A stretch of DNA of 64,000 bases, taken from Dicyema japonicum. Taxonomy: Eukaryota; Animalia; Dicyemida. The stretch covers positions 77,277-141,276 of the forward strand of contig RDEW01000015.1 of assembly GCA_011109175.1 (NCBI GenBank), read 5' to 3'. A model generated the notes under the pieces. That model was not told where the DNA came from. It saw only the letters and a program-made list of their open reading frames with translations, and ran no database searches. The first letter of the stretch is position 1; each line of letters begins with the position of its first letter. The translations under genes were made by a program, and so were the position numbers. Shown here in pieces: positions 2,791 through 64,000 of the stretch.

Positions 2791-4379
2791 ATTCTTCCAA
2801 ATAAAATTTAAATGTTATATTTTATTATTTTAAGTTATAGATTTGACAAATTTAAATGCTAGATTTTATCATTTTAAGTGCTAACTTTTTTAATTATAAT
2901 TGCTAGATTTTGTGATTTTTTAGCGCTAAAAAAATTTTTTTTAAGTGCTAGAAACAACTTGCCCTAGTCATCACTCACCGTGTTTTGACGATTGATATCC
3001 ATTGTGGAGATATATTTACTCGAAATCTCTTAAAACTTGCTCAGATGAAATTTTTTGACGATATAAACTCAGAATTTTAGGTTCGGCTGATAACCAAATA
3101 TGTTGATGAACACCTCCATGGGAAGAATTATCCTTGATATTTTGCCATTAATCAAAAAAAGTCCACATATAGAACCAGTGATCTTATCCCTTATAAAATA
3201 GCAACAGAAAACCAGCTGTTTCAGGAGACATTTAGTACCCCAATTACATAATTTAGTGGCAAGATAACCTATTTATTAGTAAACCTACGGTCATTGATCA
3301 GAATAACGTCTCACTAAAGTATTATTAATTTTATAATGTCTCATTTATTATCTCTTGAACAATTGTGAGTTTTACAAGAGTAACTAGTGATATAGTCTGT
3401 AAGCATATAATAGACCTTTCTTCCAAACACACGAGTATATTCAATATATTCGACCACGGGCATATATCAACTTTATGTTGTGAATATTATAAGTCAAACT
3501 GACTTTATGAACAATATACACAACTAATGAGCGATATTTGGTGATAATTAGAGCAATTTGTGCAATAAAATTCCATTTTTAGGAAAGGGTATATTTTATT
3601 AATGAGTTAAATTATATTAAAAATTATTAAAAATGTTTACTTTTATGAACTTATAAATGCCATTTTTGATTTCAAATGCCATAATTCGTTTTAGTTGCCA
3701 TAAGTGCCATTTTTTACTTTTAATTATTTATTGAATAAGAATATTGGGTTCTTTTGGCAATCTTTATTTGATCGCAAACATATGAAGAAACCCTTTCGAA
3801 TTTTTCCATCTTCGAATTTTAAAGCCTTATGAGTATTTTTATCAAATTGCTTATTCCCGTTCATTCCACTAGCCGTTTAAGTTTGCTAAGTTGTTACTTA
3901 AGTTTAGTGAGTGTGCTTAAGGCAATTTCCAAAATTTGAAACTTTAGCCATTTGTTTTTCCTCCACTGGAAGGCCACAAGGTGATTCACTTGACATGGAG
4001 GAGAGCAAGCACTTAGCTACTAAAAATAACAATGTCCTAAATATGACAATTTCCGCCCTAATGATAATATTTCTTTGTATATTTCTAGATAAACGTTGAT
4101 CTACTAATTAATCATCCCATAACACGTGACCTTCGCATGTCAATAATAACACACGTGGCATTAACATATTCAATTTATTTACTTATTTTATTTACATAAC
4201 CCAGGAAACATAGAGAAAAGGTAACAGTGAACTAACCAGTTGGGTGATCCTGGTCTCCATTATCAGTGATGATGGATGGCAGAGGATATGTTTCCTCTTC
4301 AAAAAGGCGTATGAGAGAGGGGTGTCTCATTTTGTAAATTGGGATATTTGCCTCCAAAAATGCTTGTGTTACTTTCATA

Positions 4380-4807
4380 GCCCAACGTTTCTGAGTATCG
4401 GTTATCTCGGAAGTTAATGTTTGCGAACTCTGAGATTGGTTGGACTCATCTATAATTTTAAACTCAGAAAAATACTGTGCCCTTTCAAATGTTTTTTTGA
4501 AGAACGATGTGCATCAACAAAAAATTTTTTGTCACATCGTACAACTGTTGAGCAATTGGAACAAAATAAATTCCCATCCTCATCAATTACAAACTCTGGG
4601 TAATTTTTTGCATAAAAAGAAGTTTTCTGTGCGATAGTCCTTTTACCAATACCCATCACAACAAACAAATATACCACGTTTTATATTTTTAAATTATTTT
4701 ATTTAAATTATTTTTTTAATTTATTTGAAAAATAATTGCAAAAATTGCAAACTGATAAAAGGTTGTGAAAAATTGCAATTTATGCAAATTGGCATAATTA
4801 TCACTCT
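4380..4807 (-). mobile_element. DNA transposon 5' remnant encoding a BED/CGGBP1-like zinc finger
   Basis: LFCSNCSTVVRCDKKFFVDAHRSSKKH (C2H2 BED-type); upstream AATTGCA subterminal repeats. Confidence 0.6.
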
Positions 4808-25310: not shown

Positions 25311-25382
25311 AGGCCCCAGAGGGAGTCGAACCCTCGACCCTTGGTTTACAAGACCAATGCTCTACCACTGAGCTATAAGGCC
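25311..25382 (-). tRNA. tRNA-Thr (anticodon TGT)
   Basis: GGCCTTA-TA-GCTCAGTGGTAGAGC-A-TTGGT CT TGT AA ACCAA-GGGTC-GAGGG TTCGACT CCCTC-TGGGGCC-T. Full cloverleaf; TTTT terminator follows. Confidence 0.96.
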
Positions 25383-39660: not shown

Positions 39661-40019
39661 CATAGCTACATGCAACCATCCGCCTGTTGAATTTTATGTG
39701 CGTTACCATGTTAACAATTACTCGATAATAAATTATTGATAGCGTGCTTTAAAATATTCAAATATATTGATTCCATGTCTGTTTCGTTAAAGTCTAAGAG
39801 GAATATCTGAGTAAAACTATATTGGAAGAAGAAATTTTGATGTTAGTTTACTCGAAAAAATAATGGAAGTCAGAAAATTTTACTACTATCTACGGTCCCT
39901 AGTAGCTTATGAATGATTTGAGAATGACAGGCTCTTTATTACAATGACGAATACTTGGTTTCAAATTAAAATATTACATTTTTTAGCAAAAAAGCAAAAT
40001 TTAATGTTTACTATAGTTA

Positions 40020-43003: not shown

Positions 43004-43433
43004 TTTTTGAAATTATACAGTGAATCACTAGTTAGCTCTCTTCAATGTAAAATCATAGACGAAATTTTATAAATCCTGAGACTGATGGACACACCCATAC
43101 GATTGAAAAGCTGAAGGTAAGTGCCAGATGGAGGAGCAAGTTGCAATGTAGAACCGCAAGACAAATAGGGGCTCGTATTTTTCTGGTTTAAGTATATAAG
43201 CTAAAAATATTGAATTTAGCATCAGAAAACAAATCAGATGTTATTATTACGTATTTAGAGAGATCTTAGAAATCATTGATTTGTTTTGGCCCTATTCTGT
43301 TCGAATGAAACGTAGAGAATAATAATAATTTTAAAAAATTACAATAAAATTTCAGAAAAAAAATAAATTAAAATGTTAGTTAATATCTATTTTTAGCAAG
43401 TTTAAAAAATATATTTTTGAAAAAGTATATATT

Positions 43434-45388
43434 TTTGGTGAGGTGGTGACGTGCCTCGTTTCTTAATTGGATCACAGTTAAGAAAAATGTCTAAAAAGCA
43501 AGGGATACAAAGGGATGCATCTCGTCTAAAGCTCCATACGTTCAATGCTAGAGGCTTATCTACGACATGGTCGAGGAAGATTCTTTGACGACCTGGAGAG
43601 ATACGACGTATCTATTAGGTGCCTACAAGAGACGAAAGTTACTTGTAGCCTTGCGAATAACGAATAATATGTCTACCGAGCGACTCAAAATATTATGGAC
43701 TTGGATTTGCCATCCACTCAAAGTTGACAAGTACAGTCAACCGTATATTTAGTGTGAATGACAGGATCTGTGTTATACAAATCCGGCTAAACGACTTACC
43801 TCCTTCGAAGAGGCTCACTTTGAGAAGCTTTTCAACATCATAACCATAGAAATCCACCCATTTGATGGAAGGCCAAGACCCCTGGAGATACCAATCACGG
43901 CCGAGGAAATCAAAACGGCCTGCCGAAAACTCAAGAATAACAGAAGTCCTGGACCAGACAAAATAGATTCCGAACTACTAAAATACGGAACCACTGCCTG
44001 TATGACAAAATTGCAATACTATTAAATGGAATGTTTTCTACCAACTGCACTCTACCTTGGGTACGGGACTACTAATCCCCATTCAAAAAATTAACAAAAC
44101 CAAAGGACCGCTCGAAAATTTGTGACCCATCATACTACTAAATTCATTACGCAAAGTCTTAGCAAACATTGTGCTTGAACAAATAAAAGGATCTGCTTAC
44201 AGATACCTACAGATAGTCAAAATGGTTTTCGAGAAGGGAGATCCACAGCTGATGCGGTCTGGAATCACAGATGGAGGTGTGCAACATATCAAAGATACCG
44301 TAACGCCGCCAATATTCTGGGAATTGACCTATCAAGAGCTTTTGATACGGTTAACAGGAACAAGTTAATGGGGGTACTGAGCGGATTTCTTGATGAGTCG
44401 AGTCTAAGGATGACCCAAATTCTACTTTCCAACACTGAGCTTTTTGTGAGAGTCGGAAAGACTTATTCAAGAAAATTTGAAGCAAACACGGGCACTCCAC
44501 AAGGAGACTCCCTTTCTCCTCTACTATTCACAATTTACTTGGAAGCCGTTACGAGGGAACTCAGACCGTTATACCAAGGAAAGACGGAAGAAGTGATCTA
44601 CGCCGACGATGTAGACCTAATTTCTGAAGACAAAGAGGTCCTGGAACACTTATTAGAAAAAGCACCAGATGTACTAGGGAAATGGTTTCTTACTGTGAAC
44701 AGAGAGAAAAAAGAACTCACAGAGATAAGAAGGATGAGTAACGTCCTAGAAGAGAAGTGGCGACAAGTAAAGAAACTCGGTTCACTTATGGGAGATAGCG
44801 AAGATATCTTACGTAGGAAAACTCTAGCCAATGCTGCGTTATATAAACTGAAGAATCTATGGCTTAATCAAAGAGGTATCAACACGAAAATGAGAATTAT
44901 TATACGACTCATTCATATAACCCTGGAAACTTGGGCGACCTCATCAGCGGATATGGAAAGACTAGACTCGTTCCACAGAGGTCAGCTGAGAAAAATAACA
45001 GGAACTACTTGGCCTACGAGAATATCGAGAAATGTTTTATATAAGAAATGCAGCACTAGACCTATCAGTTTAGAAGTACTGGAATCCCGATGGAAGCTCT
45101 TCGGACACGTGCTGAAGATGGAATTAACATCCCCACCGAACATATCTATGGAAACATACTATGTTAGTCAAGAAGGCCGCTATTGTTGAAAACCTAGAAC
45201 AACACTGCCAATAGTTTTACAAAAAGACCTGGTCAATATCAAAAGAAATCTAAAAAATGCCGACCACCTGGACTACATGAGAGCTTTGGCTAGGAACAGG
45301 GGAGCATAGAAAAGGATGACATCTAACCATGTTCTTTTGCTGCACATATAATTAGTATGGCTCTCGTGAAGTGCGTAAAATAAATAAT
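43434..45388 (+). mobile_element. RTE-like LINE, both ends present, internal deletion
   Basis: 5' motif GGTGAGGTGGTGACGTG; TFNARGL; RT GTPQGDSLSP/YADD; TSD AAGTATATATT at 43423-43433 and 45389-45399. Confidence 0.9.
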
Positions 45389-45649
45389 AAGTATATATTG
45401 TCGGCTATCAAGAGTACCGAGAAAGGAAGAGGAAGCTGCTTAAAGAGGCCTGGATCACCTGACGGTCCCCACTCTCTTTTATTTTGTTGGTGATTTTAAA
45501 TTTTAAATAAATAAACAGAAAATATATATTAAAAAATACTTTATAGGGAAGTTGCTGTTGTTATTGTATATTTTTCTTTTTTGTTCTATTCTTTTCTTCT
45601 ATTATACTCTATCCTGTTCTATCCTTCTATTAGTCTTTCTATTTTTTAT

Positions 45650-47280
45650 GACCGTTATTGTAGAAAAAAATATTAAGAGACCTGTCTGATCTGCCAACAT
45701 AGTAATGGTAGAAAGTTCGGGGTCACTTGTGACACGTGTCAGCGATTTCACCATTTCTCTTCTGCCAGGATGAGCAAAAAAGTTGTAAGACCAATAGAGG
45801 CGTGGATGTGTGTTTGTTATTGGTTGGAGTCATCTCCGGGATGTAGTATGGCACACCCAATCTCGGATATTTCGGAACTATGACTCCAGAGGAATTTCTA
45901 ATTGCTATTTCGAACAATCGACGCACGAAGATTATCTCTGTTAAGATCCCTAAGGCTTGCCGTCACAATTTTGCCTCTGTTCTTGATTCTTGTATCGAAA
46001 AAGCAATTATCAACGGTTCAACAAAAGATTGGACGGTGTTTTTCTCTTTCCCTTTAGTCGCACTATGCCTGTAATCGACGCCTAATTCTCATTTACGAAA
46101 ACGGTCTTTGTCAAGTCGAATGAAAGCACGCTAGAGTAGCTTTATGAAATCTTGGGAAAATTAGCCGCAGAACTATTTATACCATTGGGGACTGCACTAA
46201 CGTTATCAATTGGCCAACCTTCCTCTGGGTCTGAGAGGCTTAGAGAGATATTGATGGAAGGGGATCTAACTGTCGCTGTTCGTAGTTTGTGTACTAATTT
46301 TATTCCTATTAATTGCTCTTATTAGACAGTTTCTCTTCTAAAGGTAAAACACCCTCCTAGCCAGATGATATTTATGCACCCGTCTTTCTCGATCTTTTTC
46401 GAGCGAAGTTTCTTACGCCGATCTTCGTGATGCCCTATGATCAGTCCGAAGGAGAAGTAGTGGGCAAGTTGATGGACTAATGCCTGGACCTTCTTTCTCA
46501 ATCTGTTGCCCAGCCAGCTATACTTCTATCCGAGAAAATTATGGATCTTGTGAATGCGTTGCTTTCTGTGACTATCTCTGATTTTGGTCGCAAAATCATT
46601 TTTCTGCAAATCTAATGCGTTGGGGAAGAAAGACGGTGAAATTCTTCATATTGCAGTTGGCAACGTTTTCGCCGCCATTCTGGAAGATTGCGTGTCGATT
46701 GTCATTGCAAATATTTTTGCCCACATGCGTCTATTACAACTGGGCGTGAAGGTCAGAGGTGGATGCGAAGTGGGGTGAATTAGCCATGCTATCATTGAAG
46801 CTGAGGATAGGGCCTTTTTCAAATTGGATCTGCGCAACGCTTTCAACTCGGTCAGAAGGGTTGTCATCCTTGATGTTTGCTTAAAAAACGCCAAAAATAT
46901 ATCATTTGTCTACCTATCGTATTCGAGTGCTTTTCAGTCGTTTTCGGAAATGAAATCATTTTTTCTGAGACGGGAGTACAACAGGGTGACCTGCTCGGTC
47001 TTTTTTCTTTTTCATTGGCGATCGATCATATCTAGCAAGGCGTTTCTACTCCTCTCAATTTATGGTACCTGGACGATTACATCCCTGAAGGATGCCATGA
47101 AGACGTCATTTCAAAAGTAATTTCGGAGGCTTTTCTCCTTCCTAAGTTTCCCTTGTTATGATAAGAGGATCTCCTATCTCTCTTTGACAATGAAATTAAT
47201 TCAACCCTTGAAGCGATTTTAAACATACATTTTGATGACTATTGATGGCTTCAGGTAACTTTGCCTGTTTTTGGAGGATT
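45650..47280 (+). mobile_element. Degenerate CRE-like element (PHD, RT)
   Basis: VKIPKACR; IAVGN; QLGVKVRGGCE; DLRNAFNS; QQGD; WYLDD. Confidence 0.8.
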
Positions 47281-47324
47281 CCCGGTCATTGTTTATTATT
47301 TTTATTTATTTATTACATGTATTT

Positions 47325-47638
47325 GCCGCGTGGCGCCATGTGGTGCTGCGTGGTTAATTGGTTTAATTTTTCTGCTTGCTTGTCTGTTCCTCCTCTCTCT
47401 TCCTAATACAGTGGCGTCATGTGATCCACCTGTCTAGGTGACGCCCAGTGCCAGGCCGGCATGAAAAAGGATCATTTGCTCTTCCCCACTCCACTGGAGG
47501 GGTTTCCACAACTGCATGTAATGGACGTCTTACCTTTTATGCTGATTCCGGATGGACTCTGTTTCTGTAGAAGTGGAAACTGGATACACTTAATTAGTTG
47601 TTTACTTTAGCTTCTTTCTTGGTGTATCGGGGTTTAAT
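47325..47638 (+). repeat. Structured SINE-like family, copy 2 (longest)
   Basis: 5' G-U-rich hairpin, pseudoknot core at 47413-47474, 3' stem GATACAC/GTGTATC followed by GGGG. Confidence 0.8.
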
Positions 47639-47640
47639 AA

Positions 47641-47957
47641 ATTATTATTATTACCCCCAGGATCACTGGGTCAAAAAGAAAGAAATAAAAGTTCTCATCT
47701 AACTAAGTGATCCCAGACCGACAAAAGTGAGGACGAGTCCGGCGGGGTTGAGAATCCTGGACAGCTCTTCTCATTGGACATGGCATCGGCTCAAAATTTT
47801 TGTATGATTGTAGATAATTCGATAGTATTTGGAATAAAGGGCAGCTCGGTAGAACAGCCTCCTTTAATAGTTTCCGTTGTTGTTCGATTAAAAAGTTTTC
47901 AATGGGTTGGATATTGTGATCTGGTCCAATTAACTTTAACAACCTGCTCAAAAAAAA
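47641..47957 (-). mobile_element. 3' fragment of 'GIT*' LINE
   Basis: ORF ends RSGIT*; stem GGGATCACT/AGTGATCCT; GGGGG(TAA)n tail; similar to 11170-11295. Confidence 0.8.
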
Positions 47958-48130
47958 ATGTCATGTGGCTCGCCGACGACGTGGTGGCATTTGAAAAAAA
48001 ACCACACTTTCCCCTATCTTCACGGGTGGACCAATAAGGAAGGCCTGCGCCGCTGCGGAGACGTTGAGGCAAACCCTGGACCAGCCAGAATAGTCCAACT
48101 GAACATAAATGGAATCAAGAACAAAATAAA
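47958..48130 (+). mobile_element. 5' fragment of a LINE ORF: 2A-like peptide followed by APE start
   Basis: LRRCGDVEANPG|PARIVQLNINGIKNK. Confidence 0.85.
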
Positions 48131-48218
48131 TAAATTAAATTTAAAAAATGTTTAAATAGTAAACTCATTAGAAAACGACAAATATTTATAAATTTGTGTA
48201 ATTAAAAAACGTTTGTAA

Positions 48219-48694
48219 ATTGGTTGAGGTGGTGACGACGCCTCTATTGCACTATGTCTTATTCGTATTCCTTACCGACTTTTCCGTTCACTCTGGGATC
48301 CTTCAATTGCAGAGGACTTAAACAACCTTACAAGAAACACCAACTGGTATGCGATCTAACCAAATATGACGACTCTGTCTGCTGTCTACAAAAGACAAAA
48401 ACGACCGTACAATGTATTGAACTGTTTGGAAAATTCCACCTTTTTATCCTCCCATCGACCTACCGACATTATGGTCTCGGATTTGCAATCCATCAGGACC
48501 TGATTCACTACGCCACAGCAGTGTGGACATCATCTGATATTATAATAGAAATGGCGGACGACCTGGACTACCTAAGAGAACTAGTGCGTAACAGAAGATC
48601 ATGGTCGAAGCTGACGAAGAGGATGATCCGGAATATGGCACAAGGGAAACTTAACTAATTTTATGTTTTCCGGGAGTGCTTTTTAATTAATTAA
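48219..48694 (+). mobile_element. Bipartite non-autonomous RTE derivative (5' end fused to 3' end)
   Basis: APE N-terminus (SFNCRGL, CCLQKTK, YGLGFAI) fused in frame to C-terminal DDLDYLRE; 16-bp imperfect TSD. Confidence 0.85.
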
Positions 48695-49444
48695 TAAACA
48701 ACGTTAGTAATGAGCGTCAGGAAACCAAATATTTGTTCTAAAGATTCCACTGGCAGTTGTCAGGGGAAACAGTCATTCCATTCTATCAGTTGGATTATTT
48801 TGATTGTCTTGTAGTGTAAAAAATTGTTTTATACTCGGAGGAATGCTTGCCAGAGAGAAAGGGGATCAACAAGAAAAGTTCGGGCTGAGACAAAAGATTG
48901 GAATGGCCATACTCGGAGGGAACTCGTTCGCGATCCTCGCAGCCGGCTACCTCAACTGTCTTAAAAAAAGAAAACAACTATTAATAAAAAAATTAAAAGT
49001 GTATGTATGGGTTTTGTGAGTCTCGACAAAAAAATTAAAAATTCAAGACTCAATCCATACCAATTTTGAACAGAAGATCGATATTGTAGTCAAAAGATTT
49101 CGGCTAAATCAAAAAGCTAAATCTTTCATTTTTGAGGATGATATTTTATATTAAAGAAGAGGAAGAACTTACCAAAAATTTATTGAAGTTTTCATATTAT
49201 TTGAGTTTAAACTGAGCACACTTTGAATCATTTTCTCCGGGATCAGTTGTATTCCAAACTCAACGAAATTTTATGGAATAATAAGGGCAAAAATTAATTC
49301 CAACTTAGATTTCATACCAACCAAAAAAAGCAATTTTACTGCAACAGAGATGATGGAAGATATTCTTAAATAGAAACACGATGAAGATGTCTTTAAAAAT
49401 GGCATGGTTATAATAAGGCATCATATAGTCATTAAATTAAATTT

Positions 49445-49590
49445 ATTCCAAAGACCAAGGGTAACCAAACTAACTAACTCCTTGACCTGACTTGTCTCCA
49501 GGTAGATCCTCTTGATGCCGGCCAGGCATTGGGCGTCTCCTCAGTAAGGTGGATCCAATGAAGAGGGAAGGAAAATAATTATTGACCACA
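49445..49590 (-). repeat. Structured SINE-like family, copy 3 (deleted)
   Basis: High identity to 35762-35950 with internal deletions. Confidence 0.8.
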
Positions 49591-49899
49591 CCGATTAACT
49601 AGACTGTAGATTCTAGGTAATTTAATCGCCGGTAAATTCAAGGGACCACGTGGGCGGGTTCTTGACAGAAGAGGACGAAATTTTTATATTATCGCTAAAA
49701 TGTGATTTTGGAGATTCAATTCGAATAATTCGACGATTTGAGTCACGTGGCGAAATTCTAAAGATATAAAAAATCAAAAAGTTCTATTCTCCAAAAAATG
49801 TTAGGTTCTAATCAGCGATTTGGACAACGTGGGTGAGTCTATTGGTTAAAGTGATAAAAAAATTATTGATTATCTTACTGATTATTGATTAAACTGTTC

Positions 49900-51100
49900 T
49901 ACGGAAAAACAGGGTGAATGGATCTGATGGAGGATTTATCCACGGACAATTATCAGGAGTGGAATTCAAGGATTTTTCAAGCTGTGTCTTCTTTCTGAAG
50001 CGAATAATACATTGAAACAGATCTCTATTGGAATATCCTTTTTCATTTTCTATATATTCCACGTTCGGTATCATGTCCCACCTCGTATATTCCAACCTAA
50101 TGAGACAATGTGGTTTGAAAGACTTTATTATTTTTGGCGATTTGAACGACAAACACTCCGATTTGTTACAGTTTCAACCAAATGACAGTCGTGGGGAGTA
50201 TATATTGTCGACTTGACCATGTGATTATCCTCAACAATCCTGATCATACCATGACCCATACTCGAAAAATGGGCAGTTCTACCTCCCCAGATTTATCATT
50301 GTGTACTCCCTCACCTGTAAAATATCTTTCATGGGATTTTCGGTATGATTCCCGCATTTGCAGCACTCATAAAACAATATTAATAGTTAATCTCTTCCAT
50401 CTTCTCTGTCGAATGCCAGTGATCTCAATTCGACCAGGTCGTCCCCGTCTTTAGATTTTTTCTCACACGATTTAGATCTTTGTTTAAGGCAGTCGGAAGT
50501 GTCGATCTAGGTCATCGGCGGAAGAGTTTGTTGCAACTTTCAAAGTAATCTTCCATCGCTTTGTTAGCGGATATGTGTGATTATTCTAGCAACACACTTG
50601 TCTCTCAAATATTTCGAAGAATTCCATGCTGAAAGCAGGAAAGCCGAAAGATAATCCTGTTTTGTTCCCTAGGACTCCCTTAGATGCAAATTGTCCAAAG
50701 TGTTTGAAAAATTTGTAAAAAAAGATAATTTTCCCAATATTACATCACCTTACTTACAGGATGGTTTCAGACCAGATTACTCAACTACGTACGACGCATG
50801 GAGGTTTGCGATATCCTCTTCTAAACTAAGTAAACTAAATTCAATCGGACTGAATCCGACACTATTACATGCCACTTTCCTTTCAAAGGAATCCATAAGG
50901 AACCATGGCCGAGGCTTCCTGAGTTTCTGAAAGAACCACAAAATTCATTTTACGATTGTTCGATCAGAAATCGAGTTTCTTCGTAGGTTCTACCGTTTTA
51001 CAGTTGGGATATTGGAAGACCAAGCAAGGAGCGTCTGGGAATTAATGAAAGTTGGGATCACTTAATTAAAGTTTTCTGCATCTTTATTGGGGATCTTTAA
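49900..51100 (+). mobile_element. Heavily deleted APE-RT LINE ending in GIT*
   Basis: IIFGDLN; SPDLSL; SKVFEK; QDGFRP; end GTTGGGATCACTTAA. Confidence 0.65.
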
Positions 51101-51439
51101 GTTCTCAAATTAATAGGTTTGTAATACCGATGGGAAATAATTCTATGAGCAACCTACGTCATCATAGAATAAAAATTATTTTAATGAGAAAATTTAATTA
51201 TAAAAATTCAATAAATAAAAATTTACGCAATCACAACTCAATTAAAGTATAGTTATTAACCAAAATTTCGCTAACACGTATGAAGCTGGCGACTGTTGGA
51301 AATTACAGACATCTTCAATAGCTTACCTTGGCTAAATAAAATTATTAATAATAAATGTGACCGGTTCAGAATGAGATACGGTTGAATACGAGCCGTTAAA
51401 TATCGATTGTAAATGTACCGATTTAAACAGCCAATCAAA

Positions 51440-53290
51440 CAAAATGGCAAACGTCCCAAGACAAGACAAGACAAATTTTATTTCTAACAAACCCCAAAAC
51501 TAATTACTGTAAAGAAACCAAAACCTGAACCAAAACTAATTAAGTGGGTTTGTATTCATCGTGTAGGGTCATTTTATGAGACACCACATGTCTCTACTTC
51601 GTTTGGACCCCAAAAATTACATCACATTTTCCATAAGTGATGTAATAATTTTTCTATCTTTCTGACTTTCAGGTCGTAATCCTCTTCGATATTGGATTTT
51701 AAGTCCAGTCCATATGCCAATTTAATCGCAAATCTTCTGGACTTTTCCAATTTTTTGACAAAGACATCACTTTCTTTTGTTCTAAACCATCCTTGATAAC
51801 CATATATCAAGAAAGGTTCAACACACGCCGAATACACAAAAAGAAAAGTTTCAGGCTCCAAATGAAATCGAATTAAAGATTTCAACATTCCTGTAGCTTT
51901 CTTTCTTCGTGTTTTAATATGTTCCTTGAAAGATCCTCTTCGGTCTATCAACAATCCGAGATACTTCAATGTTTCAGAGATTTTTATATCCCCAGTATTC
52001 ACACATTGATTAATATTTTTTCTTTTACTTGCAATCCAAGTGACTGTTGTTTTTTCCCTCGATAGAGTCAACCCATTGTTTTGGCACCACTTTCCAATCT
52101 TAGTAATATGGGATTCCACCCTTTTCCATGAAATTTGTTTATTCATGCTTGAATCAAGCACAAGAATGTCATCAGCATAAATAATCATTTGACTATTTAC
52201 GCTCTCTGTTTTCGGCAAATCTCTCATTACGCAATTGAAGAGTAGCGGACTGAGAATTGAACCCTGTGGAACTCCTCTTCGCAATTCAATTTTCTTTGAA
52301 ATTAAATTTCCAACACGTATATATGACTTTCTTTTTGAAAGAAAGTTTTCTATCCATAATAACGCAGTTTTCCCAATTTCTGCTTTTGACAACGTATCAA
52401 CAAGTCCAAAGTGCCAAACACTGTCAAACGCTTTTGTTATATCCAAACATGCTATTGTAAGAAATTCCTTTTTATTTCGTGAAATTTCGATTGCAGATCT
52501 TAGCTCTTTAAAGCAATCTCCAGTCCCTTTTTTATGCCGAAATCCCAGTTGATTATCAGAGAGAAAATTATTATTTTCAACATGCCTTGATAGACGATTG
52601 AAAACAATTTTTTCCATAACTTTCGATATTGAGCAGACTAAGCTAATTGGCCTATAACTATCTGCTTTTGACCTTGGCTTTCCTTTTTTCACAACCATGC
52701 GTACAATTGTTCGTTTCCAATAAGCTGGAACATGACCAAAACTCCAAGAAGAATTATATAATATTTTTAGGCACTCAATCAAAATTGGGCCTGCGTTCTT
52801 GAAAATACTCATTGGGATAAAATCCCACCCTGGTGCTTTATTTTTGCAACCCTTAATTGCAGCATTTATTTCTTCCAGCGTTATAGGATGACACAAGGGA
52901 CCACTCAGTTTCGACTTTTCTTTATAACTACTTCTTGTATCTTGTACTTCTATCGGAATAAAAGATGCCGGATCTATCTCTTGAATTTTGGACAATTGTC
53001 GACGTAAAACATTTGGAATTTCTTCTTTTGGAATAGTGAGACCATCATCTGACTTGAGAGATATTTCTTCATTCTTATTACTGGGAGAATTCATTCTTGC
53101 ATATAGTTTCCAAAATTTTGGGTTCTGTCGACGTAACTTTGAACATTCTCTTTTCCATACTTTTTCTTCATTCTTCTTTACAACATCCATTATTTTCTTC
53201 TTCACTAACTTGATCTGCATTTTAAGTTCTTGAGAGTCGAAGATATCCCAACACCTCTTTAATTTATTTTCTAACTTATTCTTCTCCTGA
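51440..53290 (-). mobile_element. 5'-truncated LINE with intact 532-aa RT ORF, related to 30270-34060
   Basis: YRPISL; DITKAFDSV; GVPQGSILSP; YADD; KYLG. Confidence 0.92.
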
Positions 53291-53569
53291 ATTTTCTAAC
53301 TTATTCTTTTGACCTTTTAAAGAAACCAGTTTTACTCAAAAACATGAAACTAAAATTATATATAGATTTATGTTATGCTTTAAAAAATATAAAATTGAAT
53401 TTATTTTTTAAATTCTTAAATTATCTACTATTAATAATACTGATAGCATTCTAAATAATTAAAATTAATTTCAACAATAAACTCTTCATTTTTCAATATT
53501 TTAAATTAATTTCAACAATAAAACTCTTCATTTTTCAATAAATCTCAAGCACGAACATTATTAAATCTG

Positions 53570-53830
53570 TTCAGACATGAGCAGCTGCTCGACTGCCGGA
53601 AAACCTAAAATCAGAAATATTCTTGCCTCGGGATCGCTACCGATTTACTCCTGTTGCGACGAATCATCGGGAGCCGTTGGTCCAATGACGGCTGAATTCT
53701 TGCAAGAACTCGGAGGATTGCTTGCCAGAAAGAAAGGGATCACGAGAAGGCTATGGCTAAGACAAAGATTGAATAGCCATACTCGAGGAACTCGTTCGCA
53801 ATCCACGCAGCAGCTTCCTCAACTGATATT
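53570..53830 (+). mobile_element. CRE-like 3' fragment
   Basis: ESSGAVGP...WLRQRL...GNS. Confidence 0.7.
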
Positions 53831-54154
53831 TGTTTAATTGTTAAAAAAAATTTTAATTAAAAAAGAAAAAAATATTTTAAACTATTAAAAATTCCAGTTA
53901 TACGATTGTATTCATTTAAGTTCAATTAAGACAAAAAATTCAAAAAAAAAATATTTATTTATAAGAAAAGGTAAGTACTTCTTTTTAAGCTTTTTAACGC
54001 GACTCATGTGGAAGATCTCGCTATGTCCTCATTTGATTGAAGTGTCATTCGCTTGTTGAAATATATCTACGACTTTCACTTTTTCACTGTAGGCAATTCA
54101 ATTTCCTAACTTAGCGAGGATTTGTCCCATGGTCTTTTTTTACGCAACCTATAT

Positions 54155-54422
54155 AGTTAGTTAAGTTAGTTAAGAGCTCTTTCGCGTGGCCCTAAAAGGG
54201 GTTCGCTTGAGCCATGTTTTGCAGCCATCCTCCTCGCCCAGCCATCTTGTTCCTGTCCTCATTCGAACATCATCCAGATCGTCCGCTGTCACCAATTTAC
54301 GACTATTTTTGTTCGTAGTCATCTTTTAAGCAGGTTGGAAGTGTGTTTCTTGGTCTTTTTGGTTGAAGTGGTGACGTGCTTCTGTTTTTCTCTCTAGAAA
54401 ATTCATGTCTTATCATGTCTAT
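54155..54422. mobile_element. RTE insertion with inverted 5' end
   Basis: Minus-strand 3' end (TADDLDD; TAAC-type tail) head-to-head with a plus-strand 5' motif and ATG; TSD CGCAA(A)CCTATAT. Confidence 0.7.
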
Positions 54423-55259
54423 CGCAAACCTATATTGTCAATGTAATTAACTAACCTCATCTCCTTTCTCGAATGAGTATTTTGAGCAATGAAACCCACG
54501 AATCGGATTGCACATAATTTAATATATAAGGCCATATAACCTGTTGAACTATGATAACTAAATTATTAAATTGGACAGCTTTTTAATCTTTTTTTCCAAC
54601 ATTATTTGGATCATCAAACAACATCTTTCGAAAGTTCGAGTGATTGTCTGATTGAATCTTTCATTTTGAATAAATATCACTTTTTTTCTTTAAGCTTTTG
54701 TAACAGCAATTTTGAATAAACTCTTCAAAATTGGCAGGTCAGAATTTTCGTACAGACAATATCATAAGAATTCGTGGAAGTGCTCTGAATGAAATATAAT
54801 ATCCGTCAAAAACTAAATATATATTAGACATTTTGATAAAGCCTTTCAACTCTATTTGATGAATCCACTAATATATAATGAAGAAATGTAAGACAATACA
54901 AAAATAATATGGACTAAGCATTAGCAACAAACGAAGCACCACAACAACGTGGGACAAGCGTGACATAACAATTCAAATTAGAATTAATGTTTATATTATA
55001 ATTTTATACATTAAAATTAATATTTTATATTACTAAAAATTAGAATTTAATCAAAAGAACAATTTTCATAGATTGAAAAAAATTCAAAAAATTCAAAAAT
55101 CGATATTGCAAGTAGCGCATAGTTGCAAGTAGCGCTCGCGACATATTAAAGTTTATTCCAATCAGCAACAAATCGGTAAAGAAACGATGATGTGCCATTG
55201 GATATGGATTATAATCGAATAAAAATATTTTTAAGAAATAGAATATAAACCATATTTAA

Positions 55260-55500
55260 AACTGCCATCCATCCAAAGTGGCCCGCCGACATTATCGACG
55301 TTGCGTTGCTCTCACGATTGCAACAGAGATCAACTGGAGTAGCCACCGGGTCTCACGTGCGTCGTGGCTTTTTAGTGTAGCTAAGCGTCAAGTTTCTTTA
55401 GGAAGCGAAGCGATTTTCCATTATTCCTCCAGTTGTCTCGACAGTATCGATAAAACGCGAATCGGTCGCGTAGCGCTTTGTATTTTTCTCCTTTTCCTCG
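55260..55500 (-). mobile_element. CRE-like 3' fragment, family of 21830-25150
   Basis: High nucleotide similarity to 21830-22050 and 15380-15630. Confidence 0.85.
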
Positions 55501-55599
55501 TAAAAATAATCTATATTCAATATTGAAAAAATTAAATTACTAGATAAATCAATACTTTCTGAAAATGAATCCTCATTACTTGCTTATGTAATTTTTGTC

Positions 55600-57250
55600 A
55601 AAGATGGACTGATTATGCAGGGATGTCCAGGAAACTTGGCCATTTTTAGGATACCTCACTGGCGTTCCGTTACGTAATCAATATTTGGGACGACGTTTAG
55701 CGTTTTCAGTGACATTTGAATCTATTTCTAGAATCTCGATAAAATTCTAAAGCATCGGTTTTGTATTACCTCCAGTTTGCTCTGCGCGGATAGAGATGGA
55801 AGGATGATCGGTAAAATAAATCTTTCGTACAAAGCTCTGACAAAGGTATGGAAGATACCGGAAAATGTGAAAAATTCTTAATAATTCCAACTTTCTTTTG
55901 GATCTTCGAGGCTATTAGATCAGGGGTAGGTGACTGCCAAGATGGAGGGGGTCTTCTTGGTAGGATCGGAAATCATAAAAATTATCTGCGGCGTTATCTG
56001 ATTCTCTTTTCGTGAGGAGGTGAAGGTTGTCACGTGTTATTTACTTGGTGAGACTTTTTGGCAGTTCTTCAAAACCAGGTTTAATTTCTCCAGTCCAAAT
56101 TGTGTCGCCTCCCAGTTTTTCAATGTTTTGCTGCAATAGCTACTCGTCATAGTAGGACATAAGGATGAAGTTGTGGTAACTGAGTTGGATGAACTTAGGA
56201 ACACCTTAAAGTTTGCAAGAAATGACTTGGGTTTAAGGTAGGATAGAAGTTATAAATTTTTTTGCGTTAGGATCTTCCGGGTACTTAATCAAATGCCTTC
56301 TCTATATTAGCTGAGACCAAAAAGTTCTTTCGTGTGAGTTGAGAGTATTGAACCAATTTGCCCAAGTAAGTTGTGGTTAAGTGTCGCCGAAACCACGTTA
56401 AAAGAAGGGAAGTGCATTGGACAGACAGATCTTTTGAAGGACCAGTTTTCTAAAACACGTGACAGAGCACAGATGATGGAGACCGGCCGATAGAAGGAGA
56501 AAAACTGGTGGTTTGTTTTTCTTCAAAATAGGGTAATTTAATGATTTCTTCCATAGCAACGAAATCTTGTTTTTGTTCAACGAAAAATTAAATATCTGAG
56601 TTATTGCTTCTATCGTGGATAAACCCAGGCTTTTAGTTTAAGAAAAAAAGATGTCGTCTGATCCCTAGAACGACGATTTATTCATTTCCTGATGGCTGAA
56701 TGCACTGTAAATATGTCATAGAGAATTATGCAAATTTTTTAAATCTTTTTTTTACAACATGGACAAAGATCCAAGTTTTTGGAATGTGGTCTATAGCTGC
56801 TTTCACATAGTCTTTCATAAGGTCATTGGGATCTGTCTTGTGGTTTGAATTTAAGTGTTTAGAGTACTTCTTGAAACCATATCGCGGTGAAAGAGATGTT
56901 TTTCCAGAACAGCTTCCAAGCGTTTTTTATATGCTTTGTAATGTTACACATGATTTCTTTATTTAGGTTTAAATTTTGTCACTGACGTCTACTGACTGTC
57001 ACGTTTTTTTTGTTTTTTCTAGTTTGGACTAAGCTTCGTGTTTAGAATCAATAGAATGCAAAGGACGACGGTATCGATCAAATGGAAATCTTCTATCCGA
57101 AAACCTTGAAGGTGTTTTCAATTACATGAATGTGAGCCAGACTACCTGTGAGAAGTGAGAATGGTTTTTAAAGTATGAGTTAACGAATGTGACAAGTAAT
57201 CTACGATGTTCTTCTAGATTTCTCATCTTTTTCCTATATTCATGATGTTC
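55600..57250 (-). mobile_element. Degenerate LINE (RT)
   Basis: PILKKNK...YRPVSII...SRVLE; EAFD; many stops. Confidence 0.55.
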
Positions 57251-57598: not shown

Positions 57599-57699
57599 TT
57601 TTTTAAATTATTATTAACCCAAGAACACCAATAGTTAATTTAATTATTAAATTTTTTTAACATGTGAAAAATTTATTAACAACAAAATATTATTTATTA

Positions 57700-58901
57700 A
57701 CTATGGGGAGAGCGGCTGTTGACATCACGGAGTAAGCGTTTCCGCTGACAACTGCGATACCAATTCGTTGCCTCAGTCAGACCGCTTCCCGCACGTCTTT
57801 CTTGCGGTGGGCCAATTCTCCAGGGTGCAAGGTGCTCTGCCCGCAAACCGAGATCCAACTACGAGCTGCGATACCAATTCGTTGCTCAGCCAGACCGCTT
57901 CCCGCACGTCTTTCTTGCGGTGGGCAATTCTCCCAGGGTGCAGGTGCTCTGCCCGCACTACTTTTGCACGAGAGCGGGTGCAGCCCTTTGGCATCGACCA
58001 TCCCTCCACAACGACATCGATGTTCGACGCAAACATCAACTCCCAGGCATTGTGCGATCCCAATCCGAAAACAGTCATCGTCAAAAGAGTCCCCAAGGAG
58101 GAACACGAAGTGCATCCAGCCACGCTTCGCTCCCATGGTTGGCGGCGGACACAGGCATGCAAGACGATGTTAGTTGGCCTTAGACTTTAGCACGTCTAGA
58201 TGTTCTCGGAGTAGATATCATCCACTCATGTTGCCTCGAAGGATCGTTCGGCATATCCAAACCAGTTTCATACCATTCGCTACGAGCTTCGTCGAAGACT
58301 TTTTCCCTAGAAAGTCCGGTTGGAAAACGTAGGATATCTTGGACCAAAAGGCTTCCACTTGAGAGCAATGACACATATGCTGGAAAGGCGATCTCCCGCG
58401 CAGACCTGAGACCCGTTTCTCCGAGGCGTGTAGGAAGCTTGCATTGGTTCCAACTCGGCACATCAAAGTGGATGTTTAGAAGCAATTCAGCTGATTTTCT
58501 CAATTTCCTATCCAGTGACAGGAGGTTGTCACGATGTTTGAAGCAGGGAGAACATTGGAGAGCATATATGAGTTTGGGAAAGCCGATGCTATTCTTCAAA
58601 AGGAAGAACGCTGTATGACCTTCGAGTAAGGAGAGTTTCTCCGTGACTCTAGAGAGTTCATCATATTTTGTTAAAAGATGGCTCCGCAGTTCCTTTTCGT
58701 CAAGTGGGCACCCAAGAAAGTATGTCCACTCCATGGGTACGACAGTAATTCCAGTAGTATCGAATTGAAAGACTCGACCACGTTGATAAAATCACTCTCC
58801 GAGTATGTGATAATTATTAGCTCCGATTCTTTATGTTTATTTCAAGTCCGAGGATTCGTAGTGCCGGCACGGCATGTGACAGAACGTCGTAAACTTTTCT
58901 C
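57700..58901 (-). mobile_element. 5'-truncated, internally deleted CRE-like element
   Basis: FLGCPL; AFFLLKNS; KLPTRLG; CRCGG..D..GLHPLSC; RQRIGIAVVSGNA. Confidence 0.9.
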
Positions 58902-59159
58902 CACGGAACGTCTAAGAACAATCACAGACCTGTTATTGCTCACTTTCAAGTGTTTTAAACATTGACCCCTCTAGGATGTCGATCGTCTAGAATCGAAAAA
59001 CTAATAAGTATTTTTGAATCTGGTGCGTTATAATTAATCAAACATATCACTCTACCAAACAACAACGGTCATGCACCACTACCCACAGAATCAAGAAAAA
59101 GATATCAGTCTGTCAATCCTTACGGGTGAGTTTTTCTGTGTTGAGTCAAATTGAGCCGC

Positions 59160-59208
<49 letters not shown>

Positions 59209-59349
59209 TTTGCAACCATACTTCCCCCGGAGCCCAAAGACTTTGGTTTCCCGGAAGCAACCCGCTAATGTACAAATACTTATTAGCGGGGTACTAGTTG
59301 GCATCGTTTATAGTTGGAACTACGACGAGATCTAATCGACTTCGATACT

Positions 59350-59398
<49 letters not shown>

Positions 59399-60235
59399 TG
59401 TAGTTCGTCCTGCACCGGTCTACGAATTTCACCTCTAGCGGTGCAATACGAATGCCCCCGTCTGTCTCTGTTAATCATTACTTTGCTACTGTTAACCAAT
59501 AGAAAAGTCTTTTTCTATTATTCCATGCTGAGATATTCAAGCAGAATGCTTGCCTTAAGCACTCTATTTTGTTCAAGGTAAAGCCATAGACTAACTACAG
59601 CAATGGCCTACTTGCATGTATTACACACAAGCAAACCGAGATCCAACTACGAGCTTTTCAACTGCAGCAACTTTAGTATACACTATTGGAACTGGAATTG
59701 CCGCGGCTGCTGGCACCAGACTTGCCCTCCAATTGCCTTCATTAAAGCTTTTACGATTATTTCATTACGATCTCTGAACAAATGCCCAGATCCGTTATTT
59801 ATCATCACTATCTCTTTATGCCAAAAGTGGATAATTTTCGCACCTGCTGCAATCCATAGATCTGGCAGCCATTTCTCATGCTCCCTCTCCGGAATCGAAC
59901 CCTGATTCCCCGTTACCCGTTGTAACCACGGTAAGCCACTACCTCACCGTCAACAATTGATGGGGCGGACATCTAATTGATATGTCACCGGATATCCCGG
60001 TGATCAGCAAATTTATCCAGAGTCAACTAATTCTAATAATTGCGCTTTAATAAGCTTTACGCATGTATTAGCTCTAGATTTACAACAGTTATCCACCGTC
60101 GTTTGACATTATCAAGTAAGTTATGTCCGATTTAATGAGCCGTTCGCGGTCTCGCTCATTAGAGAGCATGAACTTACACTTGCATGGCTTAATCTGTAAG
60201 ATAAGCATATGACTACTGGCAGGATCAACCAGCTA
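58902..60235 (-). rRNA. Truncated 18S rRNA copy (5' ~1.33 kb; probable pseudogene), probable 5' ETS upstream to ~60600
   Basis: 5' CTGGTTGATCCTGCCAGT; GTGCCAGCAGCCGCGG; AAACTTAAAGGAATTGACGG. Last recognisable block GCAATAACAGGTCTGTGAT. Small deletion near 59123; no 3' end, ITS or 28S. Confidence 0.95.
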
Positions 60236-60609
60236 TCTTTTCACAGCAATAACCCACACTTACATGGGCTTATGCATGTATTTACATTTAGTAACCGTGC
60301 TAAAAGCACTTGTTCAACAAAATGATGCAGTATACTGCAAAGAACTGCCTTTCACTGTAATATAGGACCCTTTTATAATAATCAACCGACAATTGCCCAC
60401 ACCGATAAAATTGCTTCACTGAATGGATACACCTTTTTTTCATTTCAGTAATACCCTGCAGTGAAAAATGCCTTTTGAGTGATAAAACCATGCAAAAGAA
60501 CAGATGCGTCCTCAATCAAGCAGACAAGCTGGCTTCCTTTATAAAACCAAGGCTCTTCTAAAGGTGCCCGACTAGTCCGTTAAAATCAACAAATGCACTT
60601 TTTACAAAA

Positions 60610-60990
60610 ATTTTACCACCCCCCTGATTAAGTAATCTCGGAGGCCTCTATCAGATTTCTTATCTTCTCTTTGTGCGCCTTCCTGGGAACCAAAGCAACT
60701 TCTCTGTGGGCGTAATGATTTGGGGAATAGAAATTGGAGAGGGATGATATATACCCTTCTCATAAGACACGTCTTGGCTGTGTACTGTTGGGAGTTGTAC
60801 TGTTTACACAGAGAAGCAAATCCATTTTGTCGGATAAGGCCTTCAAGTGATGAGGGGATTTGTTTTTCTAGTTTCCCGAGATTACTAGTAGTAGTGGCTG
60901 TCAATGACTAAATGTCGCTGATGTTTTATTTGTTCGTCCAGGACAGATTGATTCCCCATCACGTACAGCATAGCTGACAGTTGGCTCAAT
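60610..60990 (-). mobile_element. 'GIT*' LINE 3' fragment, family of 42614-43003
   Basis: FIEPTVSYA; GFASLCKQ; RPQRSCFGS. Confidence 0.75.
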
Positions 60991-60992
60991 GA

Positions 60993-63900
60993 ATTATTAT
61001 TATTATTATAAAGCACAACGTCTTGCCATTGGAAATGACAAAACCAGTGCAGTACCAAACATTAATTTTTTAGTTAATTTTCTCCACTTTCCACGATCCT
61101 GAGCCAAATCCCTCAAGTAGTCCAGGTCATCTCCCGTAGTTAGAGATAATCCTATTCTCTTCAGGTCTTCATTCAGTGTCGTGGCCAGTGATGCTCTCGG
61201 ACGTCCTCGGAACTTCACCTCCTCGGTTTGAAAGTATTCCTCCATGGCAACATTAGCTGGAGTTTCGATATTTCCCCGTAGGATGTGTCCAAATAGACTC
61301 CAACGAAATTCCATGATGTCTAGTGAAATCGGTTTAGAAGACGTAATAGAGTATAGTTCTTGACTTCTTGTTCTCATACGGTCCCAGCACGAATGAATCT
61401 TCCGTAGTTGTCCCCGATGGAAGGAGTTTAGTTTTTCAATGTCATTTAGGGTTAATGACCAAGAACTTGCATTATATAGGAGTATTGGTTTGACTAACGA
61501 ATTGTATAGTCGAGTTCTGATCTCTCGATTCAAGCCCTTCTTTCTTAGAAACCAATTTCTTCTCAAGTTGTATAAGGCCGTATTTGCTTTAATCTTCCGT
61601 GCAATGATGTCTTCTTTATCTCCAAGCAGGGATCCCAGCTTTTTAACCTTTCGCCAATGCTCTTCCAGAATAGATTCCTTCCTCATCAAAGTTGTCAGCT
61701 CTGTCTTGTCTTTGTTGATATTTAGTGACCATTTTTCGAATACTCTTGGTGCCGTCTCGAGTAATCCCAATAGGGCCTCCCCATTTTGCGAGACGAAGTC
61801 CACATCATCTGCATAAGCTAGGATGCTAGTTCCCTCCACAATAAAAGGCTTGAGATCCCGTAGCGCAGATTCAAGATATGCAACAAAGAGGAGAGGAGAC
61901 AATGGATCTCCTTGTGGAGTCCCAGTATTTGTCGAAAATGGCATGGCTTGAGTATTTCCAATTTTAACAGTTAGTTGTGTTTCAGCCAGTAGTGCCCTAA
62001 TCATCGAAACTGACGAGGCGTCGAATAGACCCGTGATAGATTCCAATAATTTACAACGGTTAACTGAATCAAACGCTTTCGATATGTCAATCCCAAGGAT
62101 CCCAAAAATGTTCTAAATCTTTGAATGGTTGAACATCTCCATTTTAGGCTCCATAAGACGTCTGCCGTTGATCTCCCCTCGCGGAATCCACTATGGTATG
62201 GTGAAAGATAGGCTTCCAAATTCTCTCTTACACGTTCGAGAGTGATAATAGCCAGGATCTTCCTGATAACATTCATTAGGATGATCGGTCTCAAGTTTGT
62301 TACTTTTCCTTTCGGCTTATTTGGTTTGGGAACCGGAATCAAATAACCCTCTCCAATGGGTAACAACACACGTTCTTCAAACATTTTGTTCATGATCAAC
62401 GCAATGATTTCGTAGAGGTAGTCACCGCCGTGTTTGAATAGTTCAGGACGTAGTCCATCCGGGCCCGCACTTTTATCAGGTTTCAGCCTTTCACATGCTA
62501 ATTTCACCTCATAAGGTGCAATTTTCATTCCCAGTTCACCGGATCCACAAATGAATGCCGAAATCACATTCTGAGTCGTATTTAGCCCCGACCTGAAGTG
62601 ATCAGTAACCAACTCGGCAATCTCAGATGGGTTCATTATTCGTCTTCCATTTTGGTCGTATAATATAGGGTACTCTTCTTATTGTGACATTTAAGTAGCC
62701 TAACGGCTTCGTAGTATCCCCTGTTACCCTTTAGCCCTTCCAGGTGCTCTAATTTGTTTAAGGCATCACATCTAGTAGCAGTCCTCACAGCTTTCTTTAT
62801 TGACTTATGTATTCTTGCTTTTTCTTTCCTGAGTTCATCTATTGTAAATTTATTCATAGTTTTCTTTTCCTGTATTTGCAGTCGAATTTGCCTCTGCAGT
62901 TTGATTAGATTAGAGATATCTTGACTTGCACTATTCACATTTATCCAGCTTGGAATCTCCATATACATTTCATCATATGTTTTATGCATCGCCATTGATA
63001 CGTTTTTCCATACGTTTAAACATGATTGGTTCGTGTTAATATTCTCCAATTTGTTGGTTATTCGTTTTCTGTATATCTCCTTAATTTGTGGATCTGAGAA
63101 ATTAATAGTCTTATTGTAGGCGTATTTTTTGGGTGGGTAGTATATTTGGAGTGTTTGTAATAGCTTACTCGAAATTTCGCAATGACCATCTTATGGTCAG
63201 TGTCAATGGACGAACCTCCGTAAGATCTCGCATTTGTCAATAATCTCTTATCTTTGCATCGACATATTATATAATCGATCTGGTTAAAAATATTGATTAT
63301 TTCTCCGTTCTTTTTCTTGGTTGTCCCACACCAAGTCGTCATATGTCTTGCAGCGTGAGCGAATGCTGTATTACATAAGAACAAATCGTTTGACCGACAG
63401 AAGTTTCCTAACAGCGTTCCAGGAAGGTTTCTTTTCCCCCTGCTGAATCTCCCCAAGAACGTTTCGTCGGTATCTGTTCTCCTCCCCACCTTGGCGTTCA
63501 TATCACCAGCTATAAATAAAAGTGCGGAGTCGGCCAATTCTAAATATAAATCTGAATAGAAGTCATCAAATAGAGCCGGATTTTGTTAATCCAACCACTG
63601 TGAGGTGCGTATACATTGATAATGGAGACAATGTCAGTGCTTGCTTTGGCATTCATAAACTTCATTTGTAGAACTCCGATGCGGTCATTAACTGCCCATA
63701 CTCTGTAGATATGAGGGAGAAATTCCATTTTGATGGCAAAACCCAGTCCATAGTTCCTGTTGACAGTCGGAAGAAAGATCAATTTGAATTTACCACATGT
63801 TTCTTCATGGTTATCTTGGATTTTGGTTTCCTGTAGGCAACCAATTGCGACATCGTAATTATGTAGGTCTTGAAAGAGAGGTCCTTTTCCAAGAAGAGGT

Positions 63901-64000
63901 TAGGCCTGGACGTTGAATGAGAGCAGCGAAAATTTCTCCAAAAGATAAGGTTCGTACTTTTCAGACATGTTAATACTTTATTAGAGCCACGTCACCAGCT
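60993..64000 (-). mobile_element. Essentially full-length RTE-like LINE (APE-RT, single ORF with frameshifts)
   Basis: 5' motif CTGGTGACGTG and ATG near 63968; APE GDMNAKVG, NQIDY, TDH; RT LRPI, GTPQGDPLSP, YADD; (TAA)n tail directly at the stop codon. Confidence 0.93.

Follow-up and report, generated by a model that had tools for sequence, protein, structure and literature searches.

A probable pre-rRNA/retrotransposon chimera in the Dicyema japonicum genome and its later rearrangement

Within a 64-kb stretch of the Dicyema japonicum genome (C57:77277-141276, hereafter “the window”; the assembly searched comprises 67.5 Mb in 377 pieces), we identified a composite sequence on the minus strand (60626-57652) that joins ribosomal DNA (rDNA) to a retrotransposon of the type without long terminal repeats (non-LTR). 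It consists of 394 nt of rDNA upstream of the 18S rRNA gene, probably the 5′ external transcribed spacer (5′ ETS), followed by 18S positions 1-1311, about 1.5 kb from the 3′ end of an element that encodes a restriction-like endonuclease (RLE), and a tail of seven A (A7). On balance, we consider it probable that the composite originated as an old chimera of precursor rRNA (pre-rRNA) and element made by a reverse transcriptase (RT), that its locus was then duplicated as DNA, and that the copy in the window was later rearranged at the DNA level. The composite copy is dead and has no function.

Structure of the composite and its insertion site

Matches to the Rfam family SSU_rRNA_eukarya were found at 60232-59228 and 59161-58901 on the minus strand, covering model positions 4-1496 of 1831. 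The 18S part is joined in sense orientation, without any spacer, to the 5′ break of the element. The junction reads ...CTTAGACGTTC/CGTGGAGAAAAGT at 58907/58906 (a slash marks the junction here and below), and comparison with intact 18S and element copies gives an overlap of 1 nt, one common C. On the element side, the break falls directly after the YLDD block of the RT (...LWYLDDATIGGP/WRKV). The downstream remainder of 18S was not found by Rfam anywhere in the window. An earlier note on this DNA had described 5′ ETS plus 18S passing without a spacer into the middle of an RT frame, with the rest of 18S missing, and both statements are borne out by the Rfam matches and the junction alignment. 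The note had also proposed a genome-wide search for further junctions of this kind, and an identical one was found at a paralogous locus, C310. As the 18S/element junction is present on two scaffolds that are ~7% apart, we consider it real.

The composite lies within a repeat that we refer to as Rep-X, a sequence of at least 1.5 kb that ends in an (AAT)n tail and is represented by at least 316 candidate copies in the genome. The 372 nt immediately upstream of the rDNA part belong to Rep-X, and the composite fills Rep-X position 1480/1482: the first half of the repeat stops at 60627 and the second half restarts at 57651-57653. Rep-X is uninterrupted at this point in five other copies (...GAGATCACTTAA/TTAATTTAGTAATTAAATTAACTATTGGTGTTCTTGGGTTAATAATAAT, also written ...GAGATCACTTAA/TTAATTTAGTAATTAAATTAACTATTGG; the loci scored as continuous are L060 and L062-L066). 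This empty site indicates that the composite entered Rep-X as one unit. Its 3′ end, aligned to other copies of the element family, is the normal 3′ untranslated region (UTR) of the family with a poly-A tail. One target TTAA is lost or ambiguous at the insertion site. Thus, of the two marks of insertion that the earlier note had suggested looking for, the empty site exists, and a target-site duplication (TSD) beyond TTAA was not found. Rep-X (L060-L067) ends in (AAT)n, as does a separate long interspersed element (LINE) of the apurinic endonuclease (APE) type next to it, and Rep-X may be a non-autonomous partner or the 3′ part of that LINE. The coordinates of all parts are given in Table 1.

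Table 1. Components of the composite and the adjoining sequences, in window coordinates
Feature	Position	Strand	Remark
Separate APE-type LINE with (AAT)n tail, inserted into Rep-X	61006..64000	-	Window lineage only; absent at C310
Rep-X portion upstream of the insertion	60627..60998	-	Rep-X positions 1103-1480
rDNA upstream of 18S, probable 5′ ETS, 394 nt	60233..60626	-	Opens (C)AGGGGGGTGGTAAAATTTTTG
18S rRNA positions 1 to ~1311	58907..60232	-	Rfam model 4-1496
5′-truncated RLE-type (CRE-like) non-LTR element: RT end, thumb/linker region, CCHC knuckle	57943..58906	-	Reference positions 1410-2379
13-nt filler TGCACCCTGGGAG at the 358-nt deletion	57930..57942	-	Copy in the other unit at ~57808-57820
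Tandem unit 2, 5′-proximal on the element strand, includes the deletion junction	57866..57957	-	
25-nt linker identical to 18S	57843..57867	-	Templated filler, 2-nt and 3-nt microhomologies
Tandem unit 1, runs on into the element 3′ UTR	57752..57845	-	
Element 3′ UTR and A7 tail, end of the composite	57652..57751	-	
Rep-X resumption, closing in the (AAT)n tail	57607..57651	-	Rep-X positions 1482-1528

The element belongs to a family with more than 600 candidate copies in the genome. Forty scored copies are 89-94% identical to the window copy, and the element part of the window is 92-94% identical to young family copies. The 18 copies that we sampled lie near the majority sequence of the family (0-12 differences in 967 columns for the eight that were counted); they have varied 5′ truncations, poly-A tails and, where readable, TSDs of 7-14 bp in AT-rich DNA. 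Copies L018-L020 and other family loci are identical to the family majority over ~970 nt, which indicates very recent activity. Pfam identified an RVT_1 domain in the element. Intact copies encode an RT, then a CCHC knuckle (CRCGG..HPLSC) and then a PD-(D/E)xK endonuclease (RPDG, VWDCTVVD, KIKKY); judged from these motifs, the element is an RLE-type non-LTR element. The best database relatives of its open reading frame (ORF) are from Octopus sinensis, with 57% identity; Octopus belongs to the host group of dicyemids. One homologue, 40% identical, carries the automatic name “SLACS,” and we refer to the element as CRE-like. A search of PDB sequences with the RT-RLE ORF gave no match.

A diverged paralog and the order of events

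The C310 paralog, ~5 kb in length, shares both flanks and the 18S/element junction with the window. Its matches comprise the upstream flank (window 61002-60649, 96% identity), a block including the junction (60079-57945, 92.9%) and the unique downstream flank (57817-56034, 93%); window 60649-60079 is lacking. C310 retains the 358 nt deleted from the window copy, with the RLE region intact; the 93-nt unit occurs once there, and the 18S linker is absent. Compared with the family, 34 changes in the element part are common to the window and C310, 25 are private to the window, and ~17 substitutions and a 23-nt deletion are private to C310. We rejected the interpretation of C310 as an allelic haplotig, given ~7% divergence, large indels and no C310 match for window 40000-56000 among the best-scored matches. 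Beyond the APE-type LINE, homology to C310 was not found within 9 kb upstream, where the contig is interrupted by an N run of ~1 kb.

Alignment with intact family copies revealed that the 358 nt missing from the window encode ...RHAAMNN...GKRPDG...VWDCTVVD...KIKKY, which includes the RLE motifs, and that a 13-nt filler occupies the deletion junction. Both tandem units share this one deletion and its filler, and they differ from each other by one substitution and four 1-nt indels. The linker between them is identical at 25 of 25 positions to the 18S sequence at 59631-59655, in the same orientation, and the match stops at both ends. Its microhomologies with the element are AG (2 nt) and TGC (3 nt), so that 20 nt are attributable to 18S alone. 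These comparisons confirm what the earlier note had seen here, namely an 18S-identical linker with 2-3 nt of microhomology on each side and two units with the same internal deletion that removes the RLE motif. The 25-mer occurs exactly in nearly every 18S copy fetched, and the neighboring 18S is therefore not identifiable as the source of the linker. Possible templates are the 18S located 1.77 kb upstream, some other copy, and rRNA itself.

As C310 has neither the deletion nor the duplication nor the linker, these arose after the DNA duplication, in the window lineage. The filler of the deletion junction is contained in the second unit, which makes the deletion older than the tandem duplication. 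The comparison thus shows that the chimera formed first, that DNA duplication came next, and that the deletion and then the tandem duplication with its linker, both confined to the window lineage, followed.

This order bears directly on the interpretation offered by the earlier note, in which a single event of target-primed reverse transcription (TPRT) switched serially from CRE RNA to 25 nt of 18S, back to CRE RNA and on to pre-rRNA, the deletion being already present in the template RNA. Serial switching would account for the 2-3 nt microhomologies at both linker junctions, and template switching by non-LTR-type RTs is documented (10.1101/792986). However, C310 has the same flanks and the same junction without deletion, duplication or linker, and a copy of the 13-nt filler, a sequence found only in the rearranged product, is present in the second unit as well. 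Moreover, the rRNA snippets that the note expected inside other CRE copies were found in none of 22 other family loci, which indicates that such linkers are not a regular product of the RT of this element. The scenario could be rescued by conversion repair of the 3′ part of C310, yet C310 shares window-specific variants downstream of the deletion. We consider serial switching in one event very improbable indeed. What survives of the single-event proposal is the RT-mediated fusion of pre-rRNA and element, consistent with the empty site, the poly-A tail and the ETS start; the linker and the duplication did not belong to that event. For these, the alternative that the note itself had mentioned, DNA-level repair with templated insertion, fits the C310 comparison.

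We also considered whether the tandem duplication and the 18S linker are an artefact of hybrid assembly. The published assembly merged Illumina (Platanus) and PacBio RS II (Falcon) contigs (PMC6736024), the structure is present in a single assembled copy that no public contig bridges, and, of the five positions at which the units differ, four are 1-nt indels within short base runs, a type of difference typical of long-read error. However, both junctions are precise and bounded by microhomology, and the filler has the same orientation as its match, features that are not expected from an assembler. We therefore regard an artefact as quite improbable.

Origin of the pre-rRNA/element fusion

The 5′ end of the ETS is present at two assembly loci only, the window and C290 (L002 = G000:C290:379782-384248, positions 622-3096). 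At C290, the ETS and 18S positions 1-1074 are arranged head-to-head with a different, 5′-truncated LINE, whose RT is encoded on the minus strand (L002 positions 886-1475). A direct repeat of 130 bp (622-751 and 2967-3096, 98.5% identical) encloses the chimera, whose architecture is twin-priming-like, being that expected from twin priming. Within 1 nt, the ETS starts at the same nucleotide at both loci (...AAT/AGGGGGGTGGTAAAATTTTTG at C290 and ...TTAATC/AGGGGGGTGG in the window). That two differently built insertions end at the same ETS nucleotide argues for a natural RNA 5′ end, and the shared start fits a cDNA that ran off the 5′ end of the pre-rRNA. AGGGGGG is, from these two loci, the probable start site of RNA polymerase I (Pol I); Pol I starts commonly have initiators of the AGGGG type. 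In none of the assembled units does the sequence extend upstream of the ETS start, and the assembly contains no rDNA promoter.

We propose the following history. TPRT would have initiated at the TTAA-rich site in Rep-X, where the RLE-type RT began at the poly-A end of its own RNA, copied ~1.5 kb of it, switched to pre-rRNA at 18S position ~1311 and continued to the 5′ end of the transcript, at the probable Pol I start AGGGGGG. The product would be a single insertion of 5′ ETS-18S(1-1311), the CRE 3′ half and A7. As the comparison shows, the locus was then duplicated as ~5 kb of DNA, giving rise to the C310 copy. In the window lineage, and in the order given by the comparison, a 358-bp deletion removed the endonuclease motifs and left the 13-nt filler, followed by a 93-nt tandem duplication across the deletion junction with 25 nt of 18S copied between the units. 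A plausible route for the latter is microhomology-mediated template switching (AG, TGC) in DNA repair or replication, of the theta-mediated end joining (TMEJ) or microhomology-mediated break-induced replication (MMBIR) type. The rDNA-derived part would have been partly homogenised by ectopic gene conversion, and C310 independently lost 570 bp at its 5′ end.

The fusion of 18S and element looks RT-mediated, and made in one insertion, because the composite has an empty site, terminates 3′ in poly-A and begins at the nucleotide that also opens the ETS of the independent C290 chimera. The same observations bear on the possibility of a fusion purely at the DNA level, in which end joining or recombination, rather than an RT step, would have linked a dead rDNA fragment dispersed in the genome to a copy of the element. 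In favor of this, the genome contains at least 52 scattered 18S-like fragments, many of which extend into internal transcribed spacer 1 (ITS1); ectopic gene conversion among the fragments is evident, and no TSD surrounds the composite. However, the composite starts at the ETS nucleotide of C290 and ends at the poly-A of the element, inside a continuous Rep-X. Two independent breaks would have to hit two natural RNA ends, and we therefore judge fusion at the DNA level improbable.

Another question is whether the element inserts specifically into 18S genes. The earlier note had named, as an outcome that would speak for R8-like insertion, CRE copies at this 18S site with the downstream 18S intact. 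The element 3′ end followed by 18S from position 1312 was found in none of the 24 loci that hold the 3′ part of 18S. The ~40 scored family copies have unrelated flanks, varied 5′ truncations and no preference for rDNA. R8-like site specificity is not supported.

These results also bear on a co-transcript origin, in which a truncated element resided at 18S position ~1311 of a true rDNA unit and Pol I read-through RNA was retrotransposed into Rep-X, with no switch. Such an RNA would account equally well for the clean junction, the insertion as one unit and a 5′ end located at the putative Pol I start. The assembly does not include the rDNA array, and a donor of this kind could therefore not have shown up. 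R2 elements, moreover, are co-transcribed with rRNA. On the other side stand the lack of rDNA preference and of any junction with downstream 18S just described, and the model requires the RNA to terminate or be primed at an internal A-tract although Pol I continues. Nor can co-transcription explain C290, which is inverted and involves a different LINE yet has the same ETS start; C290 indicates that pre-rRNA itself has been copied by LINE RTs in this genome. We consider a co-transcript unlikely, though more likely than the other alternatives.

Several points nevertheless weigh against an RT-made chimera followed by DNA-level rearrangement. First, no TSD longer than 4 bp flanks the composite, whereas those of ordinary family copies are 7-14 bp. 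Second, template jumping as described for non-LTR-type RTs is end-to-end (10.1101/792986), and the switch here is internal-to-internal; the templates required would be a broken element RNA and a pre-rRNA that was nascent or truncated. The same structure would result from co-transcription of an element within the true rDNA unit, part of an array absent from the assembly. Third, the ETS sequences of the window and C290 are nearly identical (two events in 393 nt), and a gene-conversion link between them is possible from this similarity. With regard to the rearrangement, the tandem duplication and linker are known from one assembled copy, and no listed contig piece from public runs (Logan, one 2019 sample, pieces <100 nt) bridges the linker or the junctions. 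Support for the linker is thus from the assembly alone, unlike that for the 18S/element junction. Finally, a locally templated origin of the deletion filler is favored only weakly over chance: two upstream 7-8-mers cover its 13 nt, but they do so in 362 of 5000 shuffles (7%) as well, and we rejected this origin for it.

Related systems and dispersed rDNA fragments

In primates, LINE-1 forms sense chimeras with 28S rRNA and antisense, twin-primed chimeras with 5S rRNA, for which template switching, RNA ligation or twin priming have been held responsible (bioRxiv 10.1101/2025.02.02.635956). Like the LINE-1 chimeras with noncoding RNAs (ncRNAs; U6/L1, 5S/L1, 28S/L1), the composite has a sense cellular RNA fused, with no spacer, to the 5′ end of a 5′-truncated, poly-A-tailed LINE and was inserted as one unit; C290 resembles the antisense, twin-primed LINE-1 chimeras (10.1101/2025.02.02.635956). 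Unlike in those chimeras, the element here has an RLE rather than an APE endonuclease, and there is no clear TSD. What was captured here is a 1.7-kb piece of unprocessed pre-rRNA with the whole 5′ ETS, compared with a median of 269 nt of mature 28S for primate L1. The composite is thus the same kind of product as the L1/rRNA chimeras, but generated by an RLE-type element from unprocessed pre-rRNA. To our knowledge, LINE/ncRNA chimeras are well documented for mammalian L1 and hardly so for RLE elements or spiralian parasites.

The system shares with R2/R8-type elements an RLE-bearing RT of a type related to known template jumpers and a junction with an rRNA gene. Unlike R2/R8, it has no fixed rDNA target and no 18S downstream of the element, and its copies, numbering in the hundreds, are at unrelated AT-rich sites. 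The single ORF, with a CCHC knuckle and a PD-(D/E)xK endonuclease downstream of the RT, is as in the CRE clade (CRE1/2, SLACS, CZAR). However, the copies are not in spliced-leader genes, as those of classical CRE members are, and have unrelated, AT-rich flanks; the ORF is short (~790 aa, judged from homologue P0011), and N-terminal zinc fingers were not seen in it. The rearrangement resembles templated repair insertions, such as those from Pol theta end joining or from fork stalling and template switching (FoSTeS)/MMBIR, in that a short filler with 2-3 nt microhomologies matches same-orientation sequence 1.77 kb away and is coupled to a local duplication and to an earlier deletion with its own filler. 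In contrast to such events, the polymerase and the template (a DNA copy or rRNA) are not assignable here, the 25-mer being near-invariant.

The capture of 1.7 kb of pre-rRNA with an intact 5′ ETS and the same end at C290 suggest that Pol I transcripts were reverse transcribed while nascent, and the window and C290 together provide a testable prediction of the Pol I start. More tentatively, LINE RTs of several families in this small, repeat-rich genome may repeatedly copy nascent, unprocessed Pol I transcripts, by template switching and twin priming, although we see this as a possibility rather than an expectation. If true, retrotransposition would occur in contact with the nucleolus, the copying would be a main source of the scattered rDNA fragments, and the Pol I start of an organism with an unassembled rDNA promoter would be marked by the chimeras. 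The paralog comparison is in addition a natural example of how a complex “multi-switch” junction need not be one event, as an RT-mediated fusion can here be told apart from templated repair and gene conversion that affected one and the same locus later.

The 18S-like fragments scattered through the genome are 72-100% identical to the rDNA stretch of the window, and the assembly apparently lacks the true rDNA array. The 5′ part of the window 18S has no private changes in 583 nt, where ~15 would be expected from the element part, and this 583-nt stretch is identical to a copy that we refer to as C57b. At 59132-58948 (the “type A” patch), the window carries the 18S variant of C332, and C310 carries that of C57b and C35. 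The simplest reading of these patterns is ectopic gene conversion among dispersed 18S fragments. The two 18S variants (window 59132-58948; copies L003, L004, L005 and L009) differ at ~20 sites in 130 nt.

C57b (L057 = G000:C57:141000-150000, 1344-4508) is an antisense, dead rDNA copy that runs from the 5′ part of the large subunit (LSU) rRNA through 5.8S and 18S back to 18S position 141. It is 7 kb away, with an N run of ~1 kb between it and the window end, and it adjoins a 5′-truncated copy of the same CRE-like family that has an A16 tail and no 18S after the poly-A.

Two further candidates among the fragments were rejected. A recurrent 18S end at ~1598 in a dozen loci appeared to be a hot junction, but the reference copy L003 itself stops there, and most fragments run on into ITS1. 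At L043, an 18S fragment is ~540-560 nt from a distant RLE element and does not adjoin it, so this locus is not a chimera.

Elsewhere in the window, 40413-49588 (~9 kb) is 97% identical to G000:C124:506125-515174 and represents another segmental duplication. A tRNA gene was identified at 25311-25382 on the minus strand (Rfam RF00005, 73 bits).

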